The notes beneath the pieces are model-generated. The model was given only the letters and a program-made list of their open reading frames with translations, had not been told where the DNA came from and searched no databases. Shown one piece after another: positions 18,928 to 43,600 of a DNA stretch of 64,000 nucleotides. This DNA comes from Iphione sp. A-MEVVRFRX5. Its lineage: Eukaryota. The DNA is taken from contig OZ320317.1 of assembly GCA_976226885.1 (NCBI GenBank), forward strand, positions 2,170,001-2,234,000, read 5' to 3'. A program made the position numbers and the translations under genes. How positions within the stretch are numbered: the first letter of the stretch is position 1; every line of letters starts with the position of its first letter.

Positions 18928-19844
18928 CTAAGGCTCAAGGATTATGCTGGCAAAGTCCTCCACTGTATGATACAGGGTGAAACACGTTGGGAGACAGAGG
19001 TGCTTTTGGTAGTTGGAACAACCGAATTTAGTTTGACTTTTTGTCACCTTCAATCCAGCATTTGCTCTCCTATAGCAAACATGACAATATGATTTTCTAG
19101 GGAGTTGGCAAGGCATACATCTGTTTACTAGTCTGTGAGTCAATCCATAGTACATTTGCCTAGGCAGAGCATTGGGATTTGGGCATATTATAAGGTATTC
19201 AGCGACGTGGAGAGAGAAACTGTACAAAGACATTTTCTTAGCAGAAACCTTATTCAGCGTAATGTGAGCCTTAACCTTCATAATTTCCATCAAAAACTAG
19301 AACATTTTAATAGTCCACCTTGTACTTTTCCTATTATAGTTATAATACTGGATGAACTGATCTGATCTATCGACACCGCCCATATGCTTGGTGTAATTTT
19401 TGACCGCGAGCGGACAACTGAATGCTTTCTTTTCAAATTTACCACTGGCAGCATTTTTCCTGATTCTGTTCACTGTAGAAAGCTGGGTACTGTGGGCAGT
19501 GGATAGGACACGTACAACCTGCTTATCCATCCATAATGACAATACCATGTCAAGACTTTTGTAAAAAATCATTGAGCCCTGTTCCTTCAATTCAGCAATT
19601 TTCTTCTTTTTTATGATTTTTGGTAGCTCTACTCTGTTTGTTCGTACGGTTCCACAAGAAAAGGTTTTTTTGGCCAATAAATTTGATAATAATTGTACAG
19701 ATGTATAGTAATTGTCTAGGTATACTCTTAAGTGTTTTCCGAAATAATCTGCACTTTTCAATAGAGTCATAACGACATGCTCAGGTAGCGACTTCTGCAC
19801 CCTATCCTCGCGGCCAAAATATGGGATCGCTTGGAGAATGAATC
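18928..19844 (-). pseudogene. piggyBac transposase, last exon
   Basis: Contains YLDNYYTS, CGTVRTNR, GGVDRSDQ and a C-terminal Cys-rich domain (CHVC..C..HLC..CF..YH). One in-frame TAG at 19299-19297. Acceptor ccctcag|GA at 19845. Confidence 0.9.
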
Positions 19845-19982
19845 CTGAGGGACATAAAGGCAAAGCATCCATTTAGATCAAATATGCAGATAATAAGCAA
19901 TAAAATTTGGAAATAATTTCATTTGAAATTACATATCCTGCCAAATAGCCAAAGTGATTAGTGAATCATAAAATATTATTAC

Positions 19983-20010: not shown

Positions 20011-20067
20011 TTCCAGCCAGAGGGCCCAAGGTTAGGTGGTACGTTAAATCCGCCCTCGCCAGTAGAC

Positions 20068-21225
20068 ATGGGGCAACTCATCCGTAAATCAATCGAGGCT
20101 GTCAAGGAGGAGATGTCATCAGAAATAAAGAAGCTCAGAGATGAAGTGGATCAACTGAAGAGGGCAAACGCAGCACTGAAAGTGGAGCTGAACGCAACGA
20201 TGACAGCTCAACAATCGAGTGTGCAGTCGGCTATATCGCACTTGAGCGCCAGGCTGTCCGATACTGACAAGACCTGTATCAAACTGGATGAGGAACTCTC
20301 CAGACAACGAATCTCCGAGCGAGGTACCAGAGTCATTATTGAAGGGTTGAAATCTGATGATTGTGCCGACCCGTCGGATGTGGCTATGAGAATGCTGTCA
20401 CAGCTGTTGGGCGGCGATGCTCTAGAGGTGACAGACATCGTCTGCTTACCAGTTGACGATGTGGGTCAGAAGGTCGTCGTTACATTTGGCGACATGGAGT
20501 CTAGGAATAAGGTGATGAAAGCGAAAGGTGGCCTAGTTAAGATGCAGGGATTCGAGTCTGTATATATCAAGGAGGACATTCCCCCGCGGGCACAAGAAAT
20601 TCAGCGGAAGCAAAGACTGGCAGCGGCTATCCGACGGCGAGGCAAGCGCGCGACTACGAGAGGGATCGACCTGTATGTGGAGGGGGTACGGTACGAGCCC
20701 TCTGATATTTCGTCGTTACCACAGGAAATCAACGTTGAAAACCTAACAACTCATACTGACGAGAAGGTTCTCTATTTTTCTAATGATACCCCATGTTTGT
20801 CTCCTTTTGACAAGAGTATTGTGCTTGAAGGTATGTCAGCCAGTGATTGTGTCGAAATAGCGTACAGAAAGTGTGAATCGCGCGCAATTGGGAACGAGGC
20901 AATCAGTCGCGAGGTAAACAAATCAAAAAGCGGTAGAGAAGCTCGGCATGCTTGTGGTGATTTGGTGCCGAATGAAGAATGGCGGGACGAATCAAAGGTA
21001 GTATTATCAAGAATACTTTATAGCAAAGCACACTTTGATCAATCTTTCAGATCAGCGTTGTTAAGAACTGGCGATCTTGATTTGGTGTATGCCGATACCG
21101 ACCCGGTTCTGGGATCAGGTAACTCTTTGCGTAAACACGAAGGCGGGAATGTAAAAATGAACGGGAATAATCTTCTTGGTGTTCAGTTGATGGAGGTCAG
21201 GCGTAATCTAAAGTTATGTACGTAG
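20068..21225 (+). CDS. LINE ORF1p: coiled coil + RRM-like domain + C-terminal NADAR/YbiA domain (385 aa, intact)
   Basis: N-terminal heptads, then RVIIEGL..VVVTF..VYIKEDIP (L1-type RRM/CTD pattern). The C-terminus has FRSALLRTGDLDLVYADTDPVLGSG and GNNLLGVQLMEVRRNL, matching NADAR motifs LL.TG..LVE..D..WG.G and G.N.LG..LM.VR. Confidence 0.85.
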   Translation: MGQLIRKSIEAVKEEMSSEIKKLRDEVDQLKRANAALKVELNATMTAQQSSVQSAISHLSARLSDTDKTCIKLDEELSRQRISERGTRVIIEGLKSDDCADPSDVAMRMLSQLLGGDALEVTDIVCLPVDDVGQKVVVTFGDMESRNKVMKAKGGLVKMQGFESVYIKEDIPPRAQEIQRKQRLAAAIRRRGKRATTRGIDLYVEGVRYEPSDISSLPQEINVENLTTHTDEKVLYFSNDTPCLSPFDKSIVLEGMSASDCVEIAYRKCESRAIGNEAISREVNKSKSGREARHACGDLVPNEEWRDESKVVLSRILYSKAHFDQSFRSALLRTGDLDLVYADTDPVLGSGNSLRKHEGGNVKMNGNNLLGVQLMEVRRNLKLCT

Positions 21226-21595
21226 ATCAGGGCGATTGTTATAGCCCGCATGTAATTTTGAGTCAAGCAAGTAGTTCATGTACGATTGTTAATCACTAAT
21301 GTAGGAGTGCAAGCCCAATTTGTCAATCTAGTTAATTCCACATATTACCGCCTATGCTTTGTGGGAGCAGGGCTTACTCGCTAACTCCATAATGTAACTA
21401 AAGGCTTCATATGTCTGTACAACACATTTCAACTGTCATTGATCTGAAATTAGCCTACTATTGCTTTGTCTAAAAGGTAACCTGTAGTGCATGATATTAT
21501 ATGCTATTGATTGCGGACATGGGGCACACAGGTTAACTCGCTTATTTATGCTCATATAATAGCTGCTACCGATTGACTGTCTCAATCACCTTTGA

Positions 21596-22294
21596 ACAGA
21601 GGCTGCAATCCGTAACTTCCCACCCTGGACTGAGCAAGACTGCACCCACGTCCTGCTAATATGTGACACCAGAACCGCGCTGTCGGCGGTGACGCTGCCA
21701 GTAGACAACATGCCGCCTGTGGCAGTCGACATCGTGAGAGTCCGTCATATTTCATATAAGAGACTTCTTATGCGGCGCATGCTGGTCGATACATCAACAT
21801 ACGGGATGGTAGTGGTATCAACCGGGCTTGGTGATGTATTAAAACGAGAAACCGAACAGTGGTCTCCTAGGTATCGTAGGCCGCGCGCCTATCAAGGCTA
21901 CATGGAGATGTGTGTGGATAAAATGACTCGTATGATCGCGGGTCCAGCAAATACGGGTCCGCTCTTGGTACTGGCAAACATTGCACCGATTGATTTAGGC
22001 GCTCTGAAACCAGACCTGGATGACATCACTGAGCAAATGTGTTTGAATGTATTGATTGACATCCACAACAGTGTATCAACATACACAGCTGAGAGGCATG
22101 GCACGGAGGCGCTGTGTCAGGAGTCACCATTTGATGTGCACAACAACGCAGACCTTCTGTCGGTGGCTGAGCTACTGAAATCAGATGGGATGCACGTGAC
22201 GGCGAGTGTGCGCGCAATATGGGGTGAACAGTACGCAGATCTTATACTTAACTACATAAGTGTTCATGGATCCGTTCCAAATGGTGCTATCTAA
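21596..22294 (+). CDS. SGNH/GDSL esterase-like ORF inside the LINE (start uncertain)
   Basis: The frame is open from 21596, upstream of the tracked GTG at 21689. It reads HVLLICDTR (block I-like), VVVSTGLGDV (block III-like), VLANIAP, and LKSDGMHVT..W (block V DGxH). First ATG is at 21710. Confidence 0.6.
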   Translation, partial: TEAAIRNFPPWTEQDCTHVLLICDTRTALSAVTLPVDNMPPVAVDIVRVRHISYKRLLMRRMLVDTSTYGMVVVSTGLGDVLKRETEQWSPRYRRPRAYQGYMEMCVDKMTRMIAGPANTGPLLVLANIAPIDLGALKPDLDDITEQMCLNVLIDIHNSVSTYTAERHGTEALCQESPFDVHNNADLLSVAELLKSDGMHVTASVRAIWGEQYADLILNYISVHGSVPNGAI

Positions 22295-22876
22295 AGACGT
22301 GCTGTCAAGACTCGTAATGTAGCTCTTTGAAAGAGTGTTAATGTATTGGATGTTTTCGTCTAGTTCATAAGCAAGATTGATGTTGTATTGGGTGATCTCG
22401 TGCACCCTGTTATCATGCGCTGACATACCAATAGTCGCAGGGATTTTTAAAGATCTTTGAATCTGTAGCTATTTACTGTAACTAAGCATCTATTGAATTT
22501 CTGTCTGACGTTACTGTCCATATTCTAGTAGAAGGAGCGCGCGTACGCGGGCATTGGTGTCTATGTTATGATCGATCCTCATGACTGTTGTTTGTCAATA
22601 GGTTGCTGACACGAACATGTATCACCATCTCTCTAAACGTAAGATGTATAACCCGGAGTAATGAGCGTATTACAGAATTTCAAATTAGAATGTAACTTCT
22701 GCAGAGATGGTTTCCAATCGTACGTGAGTGTTTATCATCAAAAGATCCATAGCTATGCTTTGACAAGGTAGTGCAAGGTAATACTTAGTGGGGAACACTA
22801 GCTGAAGGGAGTCCTAGAACCGAATATTACGAGTAGAGTCAATTTACACCGTCAGTAAATACTGTTTTAGCCAGTC

Positions 22877-25672
22877 ATGGGGGGAATTAAACTGGTTAGC
22901 TACAACATCAGGAGTATAGTGAAAAAGACAGATGATCTCTACTACAATCTGTGCTCTGACAAGGTGGACATAGTGTGTCTAACCGAGTCGTGGCTCACTA
23001 AGAGTCACAATGACGGTCTCATCAAGCTGCCTGGGTACACTACAGTCAGACAGGATAGGGGCGATAATGGGAAAAAGCGGGGAGGGGGTATTCTACTTTA
23101 TATAAGACAGGAAATAAAAGTGATAGAGACTAAGAACATCATGGAAATGGGGAACGCATGTTAAGGGCTATTTATCTCTCTAAAAGCAGGGATGAGGAAA
23201 CCCCTAAATTTGATTGTAATCTACCGCCCACCTTATGTCAGTCTACAAGATTGCTTAGCAACTATTAGGAAAGGTCTTAACTGCGTAACCAGGCTTTCCC
23301 GAAGGGATGTAGTTATCGTGGGTGACTTCAACTATAACTACACACAAAGTGGGGGATGTTCAGGGATGGGTATCAAGAGCTTATTAGGAAGTCTCGGATT
23401 TGTGCAGTTGATAAATCAGGCAACCATGGTAGACAACAATACGTGTCTGGACCATATATGGCTGAATCACCCGAGTAAGGGGCCATCTGGTGTGCTCAAC
23501 TGGCATCTGAGTGACCATCTGCCTACATTTGTGCAGCTAAAAAAAGGGACCTGTAAAGGTAAAACAGAATTTACCTGGGTACGTCCTTGGTCTAATATCG
23601 ACCTAGAGGACATCCTGACTGATCTGAATGTAGATGATCGTCACAAGCAGGGCCCCCCTGACTCAGCTTGGGACACATTTGTGGAAAAGCTGGAGGCAAC
23701 AATAAACGAGAGATGCCCATTAAAGAGAGTAGCGCGAAGAACTCGGTTTGGTGGATATCTCCCAGATTCGCAGACGAGGGAGCTATTCAAGAATTGGGAC
23801 TACTTCTTCGCCGTCTGGCGCGCTAGTCAGGATGAAGACAGCAGAAGGATTTATAAGTTCTATTGCAGGCTAATCAAACGGGTTGTGAAGCAATCGAAGC
23901 GTGACTGGTGGAACGGTCGCGTACGGGCTGCTGGAGAGGACCAGAAGAAATTATGGAAGGTAATCAATGATGCAATGGGTAGGAATCGGACAGGCCTGGT
24001 GATCCCCGACACGAATGTGGCAGGCTTTAGCACTGATGAGGAACTTGCAAATGGCTTCAATTCATTCTTCGTGAACGAGGTGTCGAGGCTTGCAAGGGAT
24101 CCGGTTGTTCACGAGCCTGGCATCCCTAGACATGAAGCCTTCGAGATAGAGCCACCGTCACCGACCACCTTGCGTCCGTTTGTGGCCAAACTGAAGACAG
24201 ACAAAGCATCAGGTGTTGGGTCAATACCGATGCGTGTCCTAAAACCCGTCCTACTTCAAAATCTCGACTTCCTCTCTCGGATCTATGGTTCCGTGATCGA
24301 CTCAGGTGTCTTCCCAGCCAACTGGAAAGTCGCGAGGGTTACACCGCTGCACAAAAGGGGTGACAAAAATGATCTTGGCAATTACCGACCGGTATCCATT
24401 ATACCGGTGGTAAGCAAGGTATTTGAATCATGGTACATTAAGATTCTAATGAAGGAAATGGAGAAAAGAGGCTTCATTTCTGAGAGGCAGCACGGGTTCA
24501 GGGCGGGCAGGTCAACCGAGACTGCGATATTCGAGATCTTCAAGTCTGTGGCTGAAGCGCACAACAAGGGACTATACACTTGCATTCTTGCATTTGATAT
24601 GCAGAAAGCTTTTGACCTGGCTCCTCATTCCATAATTTTGTGCTGTCTGGCTGAAGCCGGTATAGGTAGGGGAGTGAGGAAGCTCATGGAGAGCTATCTG
24701 TCAGACAGAATGCAATATGTGGCATGTAAGGATGCAAAGTCGGCGATGCTGCGTTTGGAACACGGAGTACCGCAGGGCTCAGTGGTCGGCCCAAGTGCCT
24801 TCAGCATCCTGATAGATAGCGTTGCGTCTTGTCTGCCAGATGGCTGCACAGCCACCTTATACACTGACGATATTAAGGTGTCTGTGGCAGCAAGAGACCT
24901 ATTGTGGCTTAGGGGCAGATCACAACGCTGTGTTGACGCAATTTCCAACTGGTGTGCAGATAATGGGCTCAGGTTGAGTGTAAAGAAATGCATGTATATG
25001 CCAATGAAGCGAGCCAAGGGGGTCGACCTGGACCTGTCGCTTGATGGAGATGTGCTAAGCAGAGTAAGATCGATGTCTCTGTTGGGATACTCCATCGATG
25101 ATGGCCTAACCTTCACATCTTGCCTGAAGCAAGTCAAACGCAAGATGTGGGCGGCCGCCGTGCAAGTGGGACGTGTGAAGAGTGTCATGCCGCTGGCAGT
25201 GCGCTGCAAATTAGCGAGATCGCTTGTACTACCTCACTTGGAGTATGCAGCATTGCTCTTCTTTGGGTGTTCCACCTCCTTGAAGATAAAGCTGCAGGTC
25301 CATCTCAACAACTGCATTCGTGTGTGTGTACAGTGCGGTCACTTTCTTTCAGCTAGGAAAATCAAGGACGATCTTGGGTTCGAACGCATGGAGGATATCA
25401 TAAATCAGCGGGGGCTAATAGCAGTACATAACCAACTAAGAGCCAGAGGACTGCAGATCTCTGGGAGGGGCAACACCAGAAGGAGCATGTCTCTCAATGG
25501 TAAATTGGTTAAGCCGAAATCAAGTTGGTTCGCAAGGAGTATCCTATATGAGAGGATCAGAAAGTGGAATTGTCTTCCAATTGCCATGAAGAATGCCCCT
25601 CTCTTGAACCGTGACAGGGTTCGTCAGCACCTAAGGGAAGCCGTGGATGGGGACAATGGAGACGTGCATTAA
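22877..25672 (+). pseudogene. LINE ORF2: APE endonuclease + reverse transcriptase, one nonsense codon
   Basis: Contains SYNIRS, LTESWL, DR..GGG, YRPP, GDFN, LSDH, QHGFR, FDMQKAFD, GVPQGSVVGP and YTDD. The tracked ORFs 22877-23164 and 23192-25672 share a frame and are separated only by TAA at 23162-23164. Confidence 0.95.
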
Positions 25673-26648
25673 AGGGCTGTTACTAAAACAGCAGTGGACC
25701 CGCGATGGTCGATCACGCCCTGGGTGGTTATCGGGTCGTGGCTGTAACAGAAGCCCAACTCCAGTAACAGGGGAGGGGTGACATTCTTAGCTTGGAGGGA
25801 CATTTGTGGGCGCTTACAGCTAGGTCACGTTACGTTTGAAGATGGGACTTGAGGGTACTGGGTAGCAAATAGGGTGCAGGGTTTCACAACACATATAGCT
25901 ATTATAAAGAGTGCGGTGTATCTGACGTAAGTGTGCCCAGCTGTGATATGATATATTTCTGTGATCCTCTATCATCAAGTCCTAAATCCTGTAATGACAT
26001 TGATAACTGATATGGGAAGATGTAGATCAAACTTTTAACCATACAGGAGATATATGTTTGTTTATCAAGCTCAGCATTTTTCTAGGTCAATATCCTAAGT
26101 AAATGTTCCCACCTGTGATATGACATATTATCTGTGATTTTCCATATGACACATTATCTGTGATTTTCGATCCCAAATTCTTAAATTTCGTAGAGATACT
26201 GTTAACCAAAGGTTATGACTATTGTCTAGCGGATAGTTCTTCCAGATGTTTTGAGTTTATGAATTGAGGTGTAATATATGTACCCTAGTGCATTAACTTA
26301 TGGTCGTACTGAGAGAAATGCGTGTATCAGGTATCTATACTTGTTTTTCATAGGCGATGTACTGATTGCTATAATCCTGTATAATCTCGAGTGTTCATTT
26401 GTTCTGGAACATGGAGAACTTGTCTTGTTGCTTTCTCAAGGACAATGTATTGACTACTATAGTCGTGTTTATTGTTATTACGAAGAGTTTGTCTAATATG
26501 TCTTTCTACAGATAATGTATTGATCACTGTAATTCATGTAAATGTTTGAGTGTTCATTTGTTCTTGTTAATCACGGAGAACTTTGTGCAATTGCGTGCGA
26601 TGACTTGATTAATAAGCAATCTTGAATCTTGAATCTTGAATCTTGAAT

Positions 26649-26868
26649 CTTCATCCCCCACTTGCATGGCTTCTTGGGGAAATATTGTTTGAAGTGTATT
26701 CTACCTTTAAAAGGTATCATACTCTCATCTACAACAATTTCTGGATGGTATAGCTTGGTAGTGAGTTTGTTGAGATGATTGAATATCCATCCCATGCGTT
26801 GCGCTGGGCCAGTTGGTTGCGTGGTGTCTCCAGCGTCATCGTCAGTCGCAACGTCAAAGTGAAGGTAC
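26649..26868 (-). pseudogene. piggyBac transposase middle exon
   Basis: Acceptor ttactatag|G at 26869. Reads YLHF..VVDESMIPFKGRIHFKQYFPKKPCKWGMK, containing the first catalytic Asp. Confidence 0.9.
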
Positions 26869-36870: not shown

Positions 36871-39800
36871 AAAGTTCAAAGTTCAAAGTTCAAAGTAAGT
36901 TTAATTTTTTCTCAGTGTACATCATATGAGAAATACATAGAGCTCTTCCAGGCAAACTAACAGGCAAAGAAGTGTTTTTTTTTTTTGGTACGGCAGATGG
37001 TTCTTTTTACAGGACTGAGACCTTTGTGAACAACTTAAGTAAGCATAACTAAATCTTCTGGTTGTGACAGTTGATCAATATATTTAGATGTCAGGTTAGT
37101 GTGGACCCCTACTAGTAGAACTTCACTCATCGGATCAACATTTGTCTAAGTAGCCTTTAAAACTTTTCATAGATATTGTGGCCTTAGAGGGGATAGTTAG
37201 TTCATTCCACAACTTTTGAACTTGGTTCCAGAATGATTTGGCATATGCAGATCTCTTAGGCAACTTTAGTTCGAGACTACCCACGAGACTTCTTTGGGAC
37301 ACCCTAGTTTTCACAGACATTTCACACTCTTTCAGTAAGTGTACTCTGTGTATCAAACAGACTAGCTGATTCAGTCCTCTGTCCATCACTGTCAAGATCC
37401 CAGTCATTTTCCTCAAAGCTACAGATGATACCTGAGACTGTTGTACCAAACAAAACTAGTTTACAAGCCCTGTTCATTTCAATTTGCAGGTTGTCCATTA
37501 TACCCTTACTGGATGTTGCTACAAATGGTAGTCCGTAGTCAATGGCTGGGAGAACAAAGGCTTTGAGTAATTTCACTCTGTCCTTGAAGGGGAGAATCCA
37601 AACAACCTTACATAGAGAGTAGGATCTCCTTCTTAGGTTCATAATCATTTCTTTTATTATTTGATGCCAGTTCAGTTTGTTGTCAATAGTATACCCTAGG
37701 AATTTGAATGCATCTACCGCTTCAAGTTTAGTATCACCCATCATCAAGTCTAGGGCAAACTCCCGTGCCTTACCAAATGACATGTAGACAGTTTATTGTG
37801 CATTCAAGGTTAGACCATTCATTTTCATCCAGTGCATCGCGTCTTTTATACCTTGATGTAATTTTAACCTGAGAGACGATGCATTACTTGCACTGCAATA
37901 TATTGTCAGATTGTCTGCATAGAGGATCGATTTAGTGATGCATAAAGATTCTGGAAGCGCATTAATAATCAAGGAGAACAGCAGAGGGCCCATAAGGCTC
38001 CCCTGCGGTACCCCTTGATTCACTGGTAGCTGACTGGAGCTGTACCCATTACACCTTACATATTGTTGTCTGTTACTTAGATACTCCTCTGCCCATCTGA
38101 TCATTCGTGAACCTGTACCTGCTTTTTTGAGGCAATTCACGATCAACTGATGGTCTATTACATCAAAAGCTTTCGATAGGTCAAAACACACGGTCCCCTC
38201 GTCAACTGCTGTGTATACATGACGTAGGAGTACTGCTTTTGCTGTGGATGTTCCCCTTTGCTTGTGGAAGCCTTGCTGCTCATGACAAAAGTATCCACTA
38301 TCCTCCAGGTACAAAGACAATTGTCTTTGGATCAGCTTCTCAATCAACTTCCCAATCTACGGCAGTATTGCTACTGGCCTTTAGTTACTCTTACAGTTTC
38401 TTGATCCCTTCTTGAACAAAGGCGTGATTCTTGCGACTTTCCACTGCTCTGGGAAGCATCCAGATACAATCATTGAATTTACTATTCCTAGGACTGTTTC
38501 CAAACCTATTAATAAGGCATCTTTCAGGACCTCTGAGGGTTTATTGGGCATACCACTAGGCTTGTTCGTTTTCAGACCCTTGATAGTTTCTACCAGCTCA
38601 CCATGAGTTACCCAGCACAGGTCCCATTTGGGATCCCAATTGATATGTTCAAGTACAGCTTTGTTGGATAATAGCTCGGCTTGTTGGATAAATGACTCAT
38701 TTTGACAATTTGGTACTTCGCTTAGAGGAATTTTCATGCAATACTACACTCGTTTCATGGTTATTTTTACACATAGTATGCCTGTTAATACATTGCCAGT
38801 AGTCCTTAAAGTAATGGCAATTAGATAGCATCTTAGACATGTACACATTTTTTGCTCTTACAACGAGCACATTGACCCTTTTCTTGTAAAATTTTGAGAT
38901 ATGGAGGCAGTCTATATTACCTGTTTTTGAGAATTCAGAGATAAAGAAATCCCGATAAGCCTTGGCTCCCAGTATCTTTGCATTCATCCACCCTTTTCCA
39001 TTGTAACGCTTTTTCCTTTTTAGTGGGCAAAGTTTCTCAACAGCATGTTCTATACATGATTGCAAGCGTTCCCACTTAGTTTCCGCTGAGACCGACAAAT
39101 CAGTGTTCAAGGACTTTAAGGTTGGAGCAATTTCATTGTCTAAGGCTACTCTGGAGTATTTGGACCGTGGCCTACCCATATACTCACTTGTTAGCTAAGC
39201 AAGGAGTGGTGCCCGAGCCTGACCACTGTTAGCTTGAAAGGAGCTGACGTTATTTCATGTGCCACATCAAGTAAATAGTCAGGCTTGGCATAATCGCTTT
39301 TTTGGTTGACCCAGAAGAATTTTTCGATGTAATACTCAACCATATGATCTCCGAGTTCAGTTCCAGTGTGATCAGTAATATACCGGATGATGGGATTCAT
39401 TCCTGAAAAAGAATAGTGTCCTGTCAGGTTTATACCTATATTTTTCCCTTCTTGACTGTATTGCCCTTTTACTATAGATTTTTTCACGTACTTGTATTAG
39501 CGATAGGCCAACTAGATTTTACCCATTATGTTCCTTACCCGCAGTACACAAATTCCGCAGATTGTGCCCTGTACCAAGTTCACAGTCGTAGGACGCCTCT
39601 GCTAAGTAGAGATTGTCTGAGCGCAGTAAGTATTCAACCAAGTTTGGATTCTGATCAAACTTACTGCGAGTGATGTCTGTCAAAACATTGAGATTTCTTT
39701 CTCCCCAATCAGCCAATGTAATCAGACATGCTTCGATGCCCCTGATTACTCTGGGATCAGTTTCATTCAAAATTGGTTGAGCTGCTTCTAGGTTCCCAAC

Positions 39801-40600
39801 ACTTATAGCCTTCGGGTGTTGGAAGGCTTGCTCTGCTGAGGTATATGTTGTGTCATTGTATTCAATTGGACACCGATAGAGGTTTGCAGAAGGCACGTGA
39901 ATGCCCCTAAAAGCCAGAGTGTTGTCCGAGTGGTAAGATTTAGCTTCTCCTAGGCAAAATGATTTAGGCAAATCCTCCGATTTGTCGTATTGGTACTCAA
40001 TGCCATCGATTGTTAGACTAATACCAGTTACGTAATCCTGGTGTCCAAGCTCGCATGCGTGTCGAACTATCGTTTGCAGGTCCCGGTTCAATGACTGAAG
40101 ATGCTTTGGAATATCCTCGTTCAGATAGATATTCCTATAGTCCTTTTCTCTTCTCAGCTTGAACCTTCCTTTGTACGCTGTATGCTCTTCTGTACGCTCT
40201 TCTGTTGCTCAGAACCATTATCGGTGACATCCTCCCATTTGTTTAGCACAGTCTGGATACTTTCCGTTTGGGATTCCAGCCTGTCTATTTTGCTGTTTAG
40301 CACTTCAGTTGTTTTGATTAGTTTACCTATTTCCTTGTTTTGTTGATCCCTGTCTTTGTTCTCAAAAGATGACGATAACGTGGATGATAACGAGTTGTTT
40401 GGCTTGTGACCATGTCCCTGTGCGGAGTTTGAGCGAGTCACCGGGGTTGATCTGTCTTGTATTCCTGCTTGCTCTGTTGGTTGATCCTTCACCTTTGGTT
40501 TCTTCAGTTTTGTTTGATTCGTCATTGTTTTATAGACTTATTCTGTATTTTGTTTTTTTTTGTCAAAAAAACTAGTGGAAACTAGTGGAAAGTAGTGGAA
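36871..40600 (-). mobile_element. Second LINE (CR1/L2-like), decayed, with internal deletions
   Basis: ORF1 pieces at 40525-39480 and ORF2 fragments at 39179-37135 (QQGF, FDLSKAFD, GVPQGSLMGP, LYADN). A (TTTGAAC)3 tail lies at 36871-36895 and a 10-bp tandem repeat at 40571-40600. Confidence 0.85.
39480..40525 (-). pseudogene. ORF1p of second LINE with NADAR domain
   Basis: Coiled coil (40154-40525), then after a deletion/frameshift YRNIYLNEDIP. It continues NLY..IEYND.TYTSAEQAFQH.KA, KFDQNPNLVEYLL, LAEASYDCELGTG and G*NLVGLSLIQVREKI. A single TAA at 39521-39519 interrupts the last NADAR helix. Confidence 0.85.
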
Positions 40601-40609
40601 AGCCTAAGA

Positions 40610-43600
40610 ATGCACATTGTACAGCTACGGAGAAATGCTTTAAAAATTCTGAGCATAGAAGCATCAATGATTTCCAAAATGAAATTCCCATTCGAGGAGA
40701 AGAATAGTTCATAACCACTGACACTTAATTCCGATGTAAATGACACTCTCGCCAACCTATGGCACATTGCAGGAACACAAGATACCACTGGCAATGACAC
40801 GGTTATTTTAAACACTGGCCCGACTGCCATGTCTACTCCAATGAAGCAGACACGAACCAGGCCTGAGGCGAACATACAACATACAACATACAACCATCCA
40901 GTGCGGCAACACATCACAATGTAGAAGACCGGGGCGAGCATTGGACAGGTGAAAAAAACAATGTTCACAATACCACTAACACAAGAAATACTTGCTTTTT
41001 TCAGAACGAATCGTGGTTGGAAGGCCTCACAGAGGCCACAATGGAGACCTGGCAATCTGCAATGAGCCACACTGCGGCATACGTATGCAACAGCGTCCGG
41101 GTTGCATACGTATGCAACAGCGTCCGGGTACGTAAAAGATGAAACATTTAGAACAAGATTATACGAAATGAAAAAAGCCCACGGTGAGGCGGTGTTAAAT
41201 GAAATCATTTCATACTTGTCTCAGACCGTATCTGCCGCAAAACGCACAGCGGCAAGTGATTTGGCAATAGTGGAATGGCACATTGAGTCCTCCACTGAGT
41301 TAAAAATGAGTTGCAAATATGCAGAATCAATGAGAGAACGGATTAAAAAGGAGACACTCGAGGACCTTAAAAGACGAATAGACCGGATCATACAGAGAGA
41401 AACCACGCAGTCCGACTTGCTCAATGGTGGGAAGAGGAGACCATCCAACACAGGTAATAACAGACAGAATTTTCAGACAGGCGGCAGGGGACAGGCAGAG
41501 GTACAAACGGAGGATGAGGGAGTCACGGATCATTGTCCCACCCCTACAGCTGCCCGAGCATCGCAAGGGACTCAACCTCTGCTTTCTCCAGCCAGGAGAT
41601 GACCGCCTTATGCAACCTGATAGTAAAAAAGTGAGTAACAAACATACACCTCCAGTAAGCATGCTCCCCACAAAGCAAAAAACAGCAAAGAAAGCATTCA
41701 TAAGTAACCCAATTACCAAAACCTGTGACATGGACATAAATACAAGTTCCCTAACATTCATGCATAATGTGAACAAAAATCCCCATCAAAACACTTGTAT
41801 CCTTGAAACTAACGTCAATGGCACCAGAACCAAAAAACACTGAAAAACACAAACTCCTCTGGTCCAACACAATATACGTTATCATACAATTACTGACAAT
41901 ATCACTACTGTTGCAGGTATCAACCCCTCAGCCACTGCAGACAGAGAGCGACCAACCCCTGGTTTGAGGCAGACATGTAATAGTCACATCGAGGGAACAA
42001 CTTGCAGTAAGTGGTTCTCCGAATCCTGGTTGAGCAAGTTGTCCAAGAGGAGGCACAAGATGAGCAATCAAAAATGAAATAAAGACTCTAAGAAAGAAAA
42101 TCGTGTCATTAACCACCCTGTATGCACCTCTCTTACTGATCCCAGCATAAATAAATGCAAAGACGGTAAAGAGATGTTAGGTTTCATTATCTCGATCATA
42201 GAGCATATGAAATTGAAACCAACATATGAATTTATTAGAGAGATCTGGACACACTATAATGAACAAGTTAAGAAAAAGATCGTAGTAAACCTGAGTCATA
42301 TACTAAGGACCTTAGGTACATACTGAAGCAAATTAACACAGAACAAATCACGAAAGGGGGACCTAATGGTCCGATCTTATTGGAAACCATGATCAATGTC
42401 AATGAGAACGACTTCACAAACATTAACCTGAAAGAATGACACAAAAGAACATTACTAGACAAACACAAAAATGCATTAAAAACACTTACCAAAAGACCAG
42501 ACATAGTCATTAAGAAAGCAGACAAGGGTGGGGCAGTGGTGGCGTGGGACACCACTTCATACAGAGAAGAAGGATACAGACAACTCAGTGACAGGAGGTT
42601 CTACAGACAGTTAAATGAGAACCCGACTCAGAAATATAATCATGAAATCCAAAACCTGATTGACGAATTGGGAAACATGAACAAACTTCCACCAAGCATC
42701 ATTAGGGAACTAGTGAATCCATGCCCCCGGACATCACAGTTGTACCTCCTGCCTAAAATCCACAAAGGGGTAAAACCGGTCCAAGGTAGACCTGTTATAT
42801 CATCAAACGGTTGCCCGACAGAAAAGATTTCTGCATTAGTAGATTATTATCTCAATCCTTTGGTACAAAACACTAAATCGTATGTCAAAGACACCCCAGA
42901 CCTATTACACAAGCTAAGAAACACAGACCTTGACATGAATGACTTACTAATCACACTAGATGTGACAAGCCTCTACACTGTGATACCCAACAATGAAGGA
43001 ATAGCAGTGGTCTCAAACTTTTTGGCTAAGCATAGGAACACTCACGAGAAACCGACAAATGACACTCTCATAAAATTATTAACGAAGGTCTTAACAATGA
43101 ACAACTTCAAGTTTGAGCTACTTACAGGTAGGTGGCACTGCCATGGGCACAAGGGTACCCCGACTTATACGAACATATTTATGAGTGAATTCAAAGAAAA
43201 ACATATATACAATTATAAAAAGCTACCAAAACTATGGTTAAGATTCATAGATGATATCCTGTTTATATGGAACCACCGCACAGTCGAGTTGACAAATTTC
43301 ATTAATTATCTCCAAGGATGTACTGAGAACATCAAATTCACCATAGAGAACAGCCAGGTGAGCATAAACTTCCTGGATGTGCAAATTAACAAGAAAAATA
43401 CATGCATAGACACAACGGTCTTCACAAAACCCACTGACAGAAACACTTACTTATTTTATAACTCAGCGCATCCTATACACATGAAGTGGGGAACCCATAT
43501 GGACAACTCCTCAGATTAAGGAGAATCTGCAACAACGACTATGACTTTAAGTGTAAGATGGTGAAGAAATTGGTAGACTTTAAAATGAGAAGTTACCCCA

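Follow-up and report, generated by a model that had tools for sequence, protein, structure and literature searches.

Why would a retrotransposon carry, at the end of the protein expected to coat its own RNA, a domain whose relatives remove ADP-ribose from nucleic acids? The question is raised by a stretch of 64,000 nucleotides from Iphione sp. A-MEVVRFRX5 (GenBank assembly GCA_976226885.1, contig OZ320317.1, positions 2,170,001 to 2,234,000 of the forward strand), called here the window, in which positions are counted from the first letter. There, at 20068..21225 (+), a first-pass annotation made from the letters alone had read the first open reading frame (ORF1) of a long interspersed nuclear element (LINE) as fused to a NADAR/YbiA domain, and had taken its product for a candidate retrotransposon-encoded eraser of ADP-ribose. 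As will be seen, the fusion of ORF1 with NADAR is a family feature, and the proposal of an eraser, reasonable for the whole lineage, is weakened for the copy present in the window, where the active site has been rearranged.

The reading frame is as intact as it had been described, running from an ATG to a TAG over 385 codons with no internal stop, in a window that contains no stretch of N. The NADAR motifs that had been placed at about 20767-21213 correspond to a match with Pfam PF08719 (NADAR) at residues 235-382 of the ORF1 protein (ORF1p), nucleotides 20770-21213, covering positions 11-163 of the 163 of the model, with a score of 53.5 bits (E 4.4e-14) that exceeds the gathering cut-off of 35.1; the NCBIfam model TIGR02464 (riboflavin N-glycosidase domain) reached 42 bits, under its own cut-off. 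The two checks that the annotation had proposed for the domain, a profile search and a structure prediction, thus both recovered NADAR, the second with a structural Z score of 19.1 against the Phytophthora protein 8BAU.

This prediction, an AlphaFold2 model built from 22 family members (mean predicted local distance difference test score, pLDDT, 82), divides the protein into four parts: a helix (residues 2-85), an RNA recognition motif (RRM, 88-169), a helix with a small sheet (174-209) and an alpha/beta domain (228-384). The first (20071..20322, +) is one long helix of the coiled-coil type, with weak coiled-coil matches in Pfam, whose counterpart in the alignment is the stalk of the trimeric human L1 ORF1p. 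The second (20329..20574, +) has the order beta1-alpha1-beta2-beta3-alpha2-beta4 of an RRM and retrieves numerous RRM structures at Z 7.4-8.7, the central domain of L1 ORF1p (2W7A) among them. The third (20587..20694, +), with its helix and three-stranded sheet, resembles the C-terminal domain (CTD) of L1 ORF1p; it is strongly conserved (KEDIPPRA...RLAAA.RRRG.RAT..G.DL) and is covered by the alignment to the RRM-CTD part of that protein (2YKO chain residues 110-318 against model residues 41-228, Z 7.6; also 2LDY). The last, which as a NADAR-fold domain extends over residues 222-385 (20731..21222, +), holds a non-canonical active site made of E263, K268, E270, R293, W305, K310, Y341, D343, D345 and L348.

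Structural comparison of the model by Foldseek placed at the first rank 8BAU, the complex of a Phytophthora NADAR with ADP-ribose (E 1.3e-7, TM 0.69), and at the second Escherichia coli YbiA (2B3W, TM 0.67), followed by the human LINE-1 ORF1p trimer (2YKP/2YKO/2YKQ) and its RRM-CTD part (2LDY); the N-terminal part matched the trimer 2YKP with E 1.9e-5 and probability 1.0. VIA-align, which is independent of Foldseek, gave Z 19.1 for 8BAU (root-mean-square deviation 2.6 A over 162 residues, model 222-385) and Z 14.3 for 2B3W, the following rows being RRM domains at Z of about 8. At the sequence level the family profile reached 8BAU at 2.5e-5 and 2B3W at 1.1e-3 among PDB sequences; a single-sequence phmmer search of PDB with ORF1p missed NADAR, the family profile together with a canonical bridge sequence being needed. 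Transposase_22 (PF02994) had no match on ORF1p at E<=1, so that the likeness to L1 ORF1p is structural only. As modelled, ORF1p begins with an RNA-binding module of L1 type (coiled coil, then RRM, then a CTD-like part) and continues into a genuine C-terminal NADAR fold, and the attribution of ORF1 to a LINE was confirmed by this likeness to 2YKP, by an ORF2 with endonuclease and reverse transcriptase located downstream, and by its recurrence at more than 100 scored loci of the genome.

This recurrence is extensive. A search of the 1.18 Gb of the genome with ORF1p, in which 108 matches were scored of 4,117 first-look candidates, returned at least 108 full-length matches at 31-57% identity, mostly without stops; with PF08719, 150 matches were scored of 4,416 candidates, all of them at 93-176 bits. 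In the + strand loci examined the ORF1 frame closes within a few codons past NADAR, a middle ORF stands behind ORF1 in 30 loci of 30, and eight loci of 10 kb present the succession of ORF1, an ORF of about 240 aa and an ORF2 of about 940 aa, all three being open in several of them. NADAR was present in every one of the 44 own-genome loci examined (30 plus 14), so that the fusion does extend to the other copies of the family; neither of the two findings that the annotation had named as refuting it, a missing NADAR fold match or a fusion lacking in other copies, was made. Beyond this genome, 1.84 billion public representatives, searched exhaustively with a profile, gave 4,633 matches, 1,267 of them at E<=1e-10, and among the best 150 of the 4,633 most span profile positions of about 5-375 unbroken, which is the same architecture. 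A word-indexed protein search had given no match for ORF1p and one weak match for an intact ORF1 of the canonical clade described below; these blanks are limits of the method, because the exhaustive search found thousands. The public clusters, which come from Logan and JGI, carry the name 'ribA/ribD-fused uncharacterized protein', and one public contig (Logan ERR14368249) displays ORF1-NADAR, an ORF of 231 aa and an endonuclease-reverse transcriptase (EN-RT), in that order. In the ESM Atlas the neighbours are clusters composed entirely of NADAR proteins of 415-489 aa, the few labelled members of which belong to Annelida. We may also mention a public protein of 2,914 aa (P0126) that contains three NADAR-like stretches.

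It is therefore nearly certain, in our estimation, that we are dealing with a three-ORF LINE of the CR1/L2-like type where an L1-type module is joined to NADAR, and that this fusion goes back to the ancestor of a very large and old LINE lineage and has been under purifying selection. A chance ORF or a one-off chimera is rejected by the presence of the same layout at more than 100 scored loci, from 31% identity upward, the frame ending just past NADAR, and a host gene misread as a transposon by the middle ORF and EN-RT that are always found downstream. An artefact of this kind, including a host NADAR pseudogene lodged in one LINE copy, was conceivable only a priori, inasmuch as the genome does contain a canonical stand-alone NADAR; with, in addition, a ratio of non-synonymous to synonymous substitution rates (dN/dS) well under 1, its probability has become negligible. 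The stand-alone domain (L033, G000:C22:27636416-27636865, -) is the best genomic NADAR match at 176 bits, possesses every catalytic residue, lacks an ORF1-like N-terminus in the same frame, and is probably the host's own NADAR gene.

What remains of the catalytic equipment in the window copy may be read from sequence alignments to 8BAU, the Phytophthora nicotianae (Pn) protein, in which the chain number is the paper number plus 2, together with the mutagenesis of PMC11543638. Several key positions are kept: Pn E43 corresponds to window E263, invariant in all 39 own-genome NADAR domains aligned in our census; K75 corresponds to R293 and W89 to W305, both invariant in the clade of the window; D130 corresponds to D345, in a position occupied by D, N or H in the clade; and the C-terminal G-x-N-x-L-G motif is retained. 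Other positions have changed: K50 is replaced by E270, with a lysine (K268) at E+5 when counted from E263, R79 by G297, R93 by S309/K310, W133 by L348, and E125 by Y341, after which comes an invariant D343, while Y84 is deleted. Two of the three residues proven by mutagenesis to matter for hydrolysis of guanine-linked ADP-ribose (ADPr) have in this way been substituted (E125 by Tyr341, K50 by Glu270). In the E. coli C7 NADAR, where the equivalents of Pn E43 and K50 are E88 and K95, the equivalents of K50 and E125 are needed for activity and for rescue from DarT1; there D171 acts in the place of the canonical Glu, E173 being dispensable, which sets a precedent for a carboxylate shifted by two residues, and K95R is active in vitro (PMC11543638). 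The E125 position is Glu in the YbiA subfamily, Asp in the BC4488 subfamily and His in phage NADARs (PMC11543638), and the site of the window copy matches none of these three types.

The census of the genome separates two groups. In a canonical clade (L034-L040) the residues E43, K50, K75, W89, E125, D130 and W133 are all present, as they are in L033. In the clade of the window, which we designate the Tyr clade, Tyr at the E125 position accompanied by Asp at +2 was observed in 30 of the 30 members that have these columns, L030 being deleted there. Of the top 150 public matches, 148 have a Glu-type or other non-Tyr site and 2 have Tyr. The K50 position is more variable within the Tyr clade, being occupied by Glu in the window copy and in L032 and L002, by Gln in many relatives, and by Lys in basal and intermediate members only. 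In a maximum-likelihood tree (LG+C20) the Tyr sequences of the genome constitute one clade (support 99/94), the basal branches of which retain Lys50; in an inner clade (100/99) some lineages have two lysines, one at E+5 and one at E+7, and others have Gln at E+7; in the derived members a Lys or Arg occurs solely at E+5, and the sublineage of the window, L032 and L002 (100/99) carries Glu. This pattern implies an order of events, in which Glu was changed to Tyr once, a second Lys was gained, and the original Lys was then lost. Such an ordered change, affecting a whole clade under purifying selection, looks like re-wiring of the active site, not decay, as far as sequences allow us to judge.

The selection in question is visible in the NADAR domain itself. 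In seven unsaturated pairs from the Tyr clade a codon analysis gave NADAR dN/dS values of 0.09-0.20, similar to those of the coiled-coil and RRM parts, and in a second codon analysis the value for NADAR was equal to or below that of the rest of ORF1 in five pairs out of six. Furthermore, 44 columns remain invariant across 22 proteins whose identity to that of the window copy is no more than 41-57%. Private decay of the NADAR domain in the window copy was considered and rejected, its sister copy L032 being the more damaged of the two: L032 has frameshifting indels and changes at the conserved V121 and R194, hence the ORF1 of the window is the better preserved, with 23 synonymous and 23 non-synonymous changes separating the two.

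To understand what such a domain might do on a retrotransposon, it is useful to recall the chemistry of its relatives. NADARs reverse guanosine-ADPr on DNA and RNA (PMC11543638, PMC11833690) and are the only hydrolases known to take guanosine-base ADP-ribose off RNA (PMC11833690), a sponge NADAR removes cytidine-ADPr (PMC12945103), and the NADARs tested were inactive on ADPr linked to 5'- and 3'-phosphates of RNA and DNA (PMC11833690). The product of ORF1 would coat the RNA of the element as a coiled-coil multimer and would thereby present NADAR on the ribonucleoprotein (RNP), beside the RNA and the nascent cDNA; we infer this location, which the annotation had also proposed, from the junction of the domain with the coiled coil-RRM-CTD module, and it is supported to that extent. 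In the canonical sister clades, which possess E43, K50, E125 and W133, the domain would then most likely cleave ADP-ribose joined to bases by an N-glycosidic bond (guanosine or cytidine) in the nucleic acids of the element itself, and since known NADARs remove both guanosine-ADPr and cytidine-ADPr, an eraser of this kind is, by analogy, the most economical hypothesis for the LINEs of these clades. The part of the earlier proposal that concerned erasure of ADP-ribose is accordingly divided: it is plausible for the sister clades with an intact site, and doubtful in the window, with its Tyr341 and Glu270.

For the Tyr clade the sequences suggest a different course. The site would have been rebuilt once, with Tyr in place of Glu125 and, two positions further on that strand, an invariant Asp; afterwards a Lys would have been gained at E+5 and the original Lys50 lost, to Gln and then, in the window copy, to Glu. 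The clade would in this manner retain a working pocket, equipped with a migrated carboxylate (D343) and a migrated lysine (K268). We tentatively favour, at somewhat less than even odds, the reading in which the Tyr clade has a re-wired enzyme of the N-glycosidase type, with altered substrate preference or lower activity, which would be neither a dead remnant nor a canonical eraser; E263, W305, R293, Y341 and D343, invariant within the clade, were counted for re-wiring over decay. It is an unlikely extension of this reading that the Tyr clade might represent a new NADAR subfamily, marked by Tyr at the Glu125 position and by a carboxylate and a lysine each shifted by two residues, the former on the strand and the latter on the helix. 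Such a subfamily would have a new substrate and would act on the RNP of a three-ORF LINE that also encodes an SGNH-like protein, as one side of a conflict that invertebrates would wage over modified bases in the RNA or cDNA of retrotransposons.

Several observations weigh against a re-wired enzyme. The residue equivalences on which it is built come from sequence alignment, not from the superposed model. Five or six of the approximately nine ADP-ribose contacts of 8BAU are altered (K50E, R79G, Y84 deleted, E125Y, W133L, and R93 as Ser/Lys), and as these are mostly pyrophosphate and adenine contacts, binding of ADP-ribose itself may have been lost. For Tyr at the E125 position there is no characterised precedent, Glu, Asp and His being the residues listed in the literature, and the Lys at E+5 lies on another face of the helix than E+7. 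The single canonical-clade pair available for codon analysis had a dN/dS of 0.03, to be set against 0.11-0.20 in the Tyr clade, and this tighter constraint is compatible with partial relaxation in the latter. Finally, a search of the host genome for partners of the reaction, with PF01375 (Enterotoxin_a, a guessed stand-in for pierisin-like ADP-ribosyltransferases) and PF14487 (DarT), gave no match, a blank that is uninformative, control genomes being equally silent.

These same losses would suit a Tyr-clade NADAR that no longer catalyses anything and is kept on ORF1p as a binding or scaffold module, for a modified nucleotide, for nucleic acid, or for assembly or condensation of the RNP: the K50 and E125 positions are replaced together with the R79, Y84 and W133 contacts, and strong purifying selection tells us that the domain is still needed. 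We consider this pseudo-enzyme or reader somewhat unlikely, because the invariant residues are acidic and of the type used in catalysis (E263, D343, and D/N/H at 345), because the residues lost are chiefly those that bind the ligand, which a pure ADP-ribose reader should on the contrary have kept, and because a Lys was gained before a Lys was lost, in stepwise fashion and with the look of a compensation. That the window copy might on the contrary be a fully canonical eraser, stripping guanine-linked ADP-ribose of the pierisin, CARP or DarT1 type from RNA or cDNA as a counter-defence, agrees with a true NADAR fold borne by an RNA-coating protein, with the reversal of guanosine-ADPr by NADARs on both nucleic acids (PMC11543638, PMC11833690), with the full catalytic set found in sister LINE clades and in nearly all public homologues, and with the retention of E263, W305, D345 and G-x-N-x-L-G. 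Yet K50 has undergone a charge reversal to Glu and E125 is now Tyr, at positions the equivalents of which are required in the E. coli C7 NADAR, and no matching host transferase appeared in the PF01375/PF14487 search, with its silent controls. With E125 and K50 replaced, and the R79, Y84 and W133 contacts as well, canonical guanine-ADPr erasure appears doubtful for this copy and we hold it to be quite improbable. Very improbable too is a role in processing RNA ends, caps or metabolites, whether NAD- or ADPr-derived structures at RNA 5' ends or small-molecule N-glycosides, as with YbiA, an N-glycosidase of riboflavin intermediates according to the work cited in PMC11543638. The structural neighbours in the Atlas do include fusions of NADAR with mRNA capping enzymes of Nucleocytoviricota, as well as bacterial Macro-NADAR(-ARH) fusions, and the lost pyrophosphate contacts suggest another ligand; the NADARs tested are nevertheless inactive on phosphate-linked ADPr ends (PMC11833690), and action on a metabolite would not account for the fusion of the domain to an RNP protein. 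The re-wired enzyme is therefore the reading that we retain, tentatively, for the Tyr clade.

We may now consider the element that carries this domain. It is a non-LTR retrotransposon of about 6.6 kb (20013..26651, +), delimited by homology to its closest copy, which starts at the position equivalent to 20013 and runs to the tail. This copy (G000:C10:98578674-98585251) is 94% identical and has the same 5' end within unrelated flanks; the two are therefore independent insertions, and 20013 is the true 5' end, the terminus shared with copy L032. The 5' untranslated region (UTR) has 55 nt only (20013..20067, +) and precedes ORF1 (20068..21225, +), whose full-length matches were described above. 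The subfamily of the window is low in copy number: apart from the window copy there is a single full-length one, at 94%, and a partial one, at 86%, the remainder being at 80% or less.

Behind ORF1, the middle ORF (21596..22294, +; open frame of 232 aa) resembles SGNH esterases. It shares 74% identity with its 274-aa counterpart in L002/L031, a relative with an ORF1 at only 57%. In the window copy there is no ATG before block I and a TGA stands at 21593-21595; block I reads C-D-T, with Thr for Ser, block V is retained as D-G-M-H, and no Pfam model matches. The homologue of the canonical-clade element L036 has A-D-S and D-G-C-H and a GDSL match at E 6.8e-4, below the cut-off. Across all lineages the middle ORF can be aligned as SGNH-like, the catalytic Ser and His being kept in some of them only, and that of the window is probably damaged at its N-terminus. 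ORF2 (22877..25672, +) encodes an apurinic/apyrimidinic (APE) endonuclease and a reverse transcriptase (RT) in a single frame (Pfam Exo_endo_phos, Exo_endo_phos_2 and RVT_1, the last at E 2.7e-31), broken by a sole in-frame TAA at 23162-23164. The window copy is not autonomous although its ORF1 is intact, since ORF2 has this stop and the middle ORF is without a start. The interval between middle ORF and ORF2 (22295-22876) varies among lineages: Tyr-clade elements (L041-L044) have a non-coding spacer of 0.58-1.1 kb, the same spacer measuring only about 90-170 nt in the canonical-clade elements L037-L039, and no nucleotide conservation was seen there between the window and L031.

The 3' UTR, of about 0.95 kb (25673..26617, +), leads to a microsatellite tail made of a perfect (AATCTTG) repeated 4.9 times (26618..26651, +), which has three units in L032. 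Within the UTR, 26118-26168 holds a 26-nt unit twice in tandem with a 96% match, and a diverged copy of the motif is found at 25919-25965. The last 80 nt or so of the element's UTR (26567-26648) are common to many other loci, a dozen or more of them otherwise unrelated, at 86-91% identity; this could be a 3' recognition module shared among subfamilies, or a short interspersed nuclear element (SINE) sharing the tail. When the last 107 nt were folded in search of a 3' hairpin, the result did not differ from shuffles (z = -0.31).

The class of the LINE follows from its ORF2 and its tail. The Pfam content of ORF2 is limited to the three models just named, RNase H and a C-terminal CCHC not being detected; a short tandem repeat, and not poly(A), closes the 3' end; the RT scores 40 bits (E 1e-9) against human L1 ORF2p and 57 bits against R2; and the named public relatives of ORF2, at 25-30% identity, are 'RTJK' (jockey) and 'X-element' reverse transcriptases. 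A microsatellite tail, Exo_endo_phos_2, jockey and X-element relatives, and an RT no nearer to L1 than to R2 all point to a CR1/L2-like element within the Jockey/CR1/L2 superclade, a placement made from these sequence features. Membership in the Tx1/L1 group was considered and rejected, the RT scoring lower with L1 ORF2p than with R2 and the tail being a microsatellite and not poly(A).

The surroundings of the element also contain repeats. A second and far more decayed LINE of the ORF1-NADAR kind occupies 37793-41208 (-), with a coiled-coil-like ORF (40154-40525, -), a NADAR fragment (39519-40088, -; Pfam 49.7 bits) and an RT fragment (37793-38344, -; E 1.5e-22). On the other side, next to the 5' end of the LINE, lies a fragment of a piggyBac-like transposase (18928-19872, -; DDE_Tnp_1_7, E 1.2e-28, profile positions 166-337 only); it is possible that the LINE integrated within, or close to, an old DNA transposon of the piggyBac type. 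Elsewhere in the genome, the locus L043 (G000:C10:68123000-68132999) holds two sets of ORF1 and middle ORF, 7.16 kb apart and in the same orientation, with equal ORF lengths and equal ORF1 search scores; from its sequence it would consist of two full-length Tyr-clade elements in tandem, or would have arisen by duplication on the spot.

The consequences reach beyond this element. The roles of animal NADARs have been stated as unknown (PMC11125620), and the genome studied here, that of a single animal, holds thousands of NADAR domains that belong to retrotransposon ORF1s under purifying selection, so that many of the 'animal NADAR genes' of databases may be LINE ORF1s. The series present in a single genome, from canonical sites to the change of Glu to Tyr and then to the loss of Lys, provides a natural set of variants for the study of NADAR catalysis and specificity, and the window copy is a caution, membership in the fold being no guarantee of eraser activity.

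How does all this compare with what has been described? The first-pass annotation knew of no described NADAR fusion of this sort, but one had been mentioned: in Crassostrea gigas, several Repbase Tx1 LINEs seem to encode an ORF1 protein with a YbiA-family NADAR, for which a function in RNA processing was speculated, the same work placing NADAR at the N-terminus of Pol in a Gypsy lineage of Ectocarpus (PMC12477816, Genome Biol 2025). In our full-text literature search this was the one article that links NADAR with LINE ORF1. The fusion itself is thus already in print, briefly: the account consists of one sentence and a supplementary figure, with no analysis of architecture, selection or active site. 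What is new is the residue-level mapping, the single clade-defining change of Glu to Tyr followed by the ordered shift of Lys, the comparison of selection between clades, and the CR1/L2-like assignment. Like the oyster elements, that of the window has a YbiA-family NADAR inside a LINE ORF1; unlike what the Tx1 label implies, and compared by description only, it ends in a microsatellite, has an RT no nearer to L1 than to R2, and possesses a separate SGNH-like ORF.

In the ORF1 typology of Khazina and Weichenrieder, as relayed in PMC4120745, Type II is defined by coiled coil, RRM and CTD and Type IV by an esterase in CR1/L2 lineages, and NADAR is not among the domains listed in that rendering; Metcalfe and Casane found esterase ORF1s in vertebrate subgroups only (PMC4120745). 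The window element shares with CR1/L2 elements having esterase ORF1s of Type IV, such as ZfL2-1 (PMC3905857), an SGNH-like protein upstream of EN-RT, which differs in being a separate second ORF, placed after a Type II-like ORF1-NADAR, and in having the catalytic Ser and His in some lineages only. Its NADAR resembles Phytophthora nicotianae 8BAU, YbiA 2B3W and the antitoxins associated with DarT1 (PMC11543638) in its fold, in E43, K75 (as Arg), W89 and D130, and in G-x-N-x-L-G; it departs from them by K50 to Glu, E125 to Tyr (with Asp at +2), W133 to Leu, R79 to Gly and the deletion of Y84, and, unlike stand-alone NADARs or those of DarT operons, it is fused to an RNA-binding protein.

With human LINE-1 ORF1p of Type II (2YKP/2YKO/2YKQ, 2LDY, 2W7A) the likeness resides in the same order of coiled coil, RRM and CTD-like part; sequence similarity was not detected between the two, and some 160 residues of NADAR are added after the CTD. 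Viral macrodomains, such as Mac1 of coronaviruses and that of alphavirus nsP3, are ADP-ribose erasers encoded by selfish replicators, with a macro fold and with ADP-ribosylated proteins as substrates. The parallel with these is one of concept, a selfish element having placed an ADP-ribose hydrolase fold beside its replication machinery, the fold being here NADAR and the class of substrate ADPr on bases, with a function proposed by analogy. If it holds, a LINE-borne fold for hydrolysis of base-linked ADP-ribose would be the counterpart of the viral macrodomains, and ADP-ribosylation of nucleic acids would become a possible mechanism of defence against transposons.

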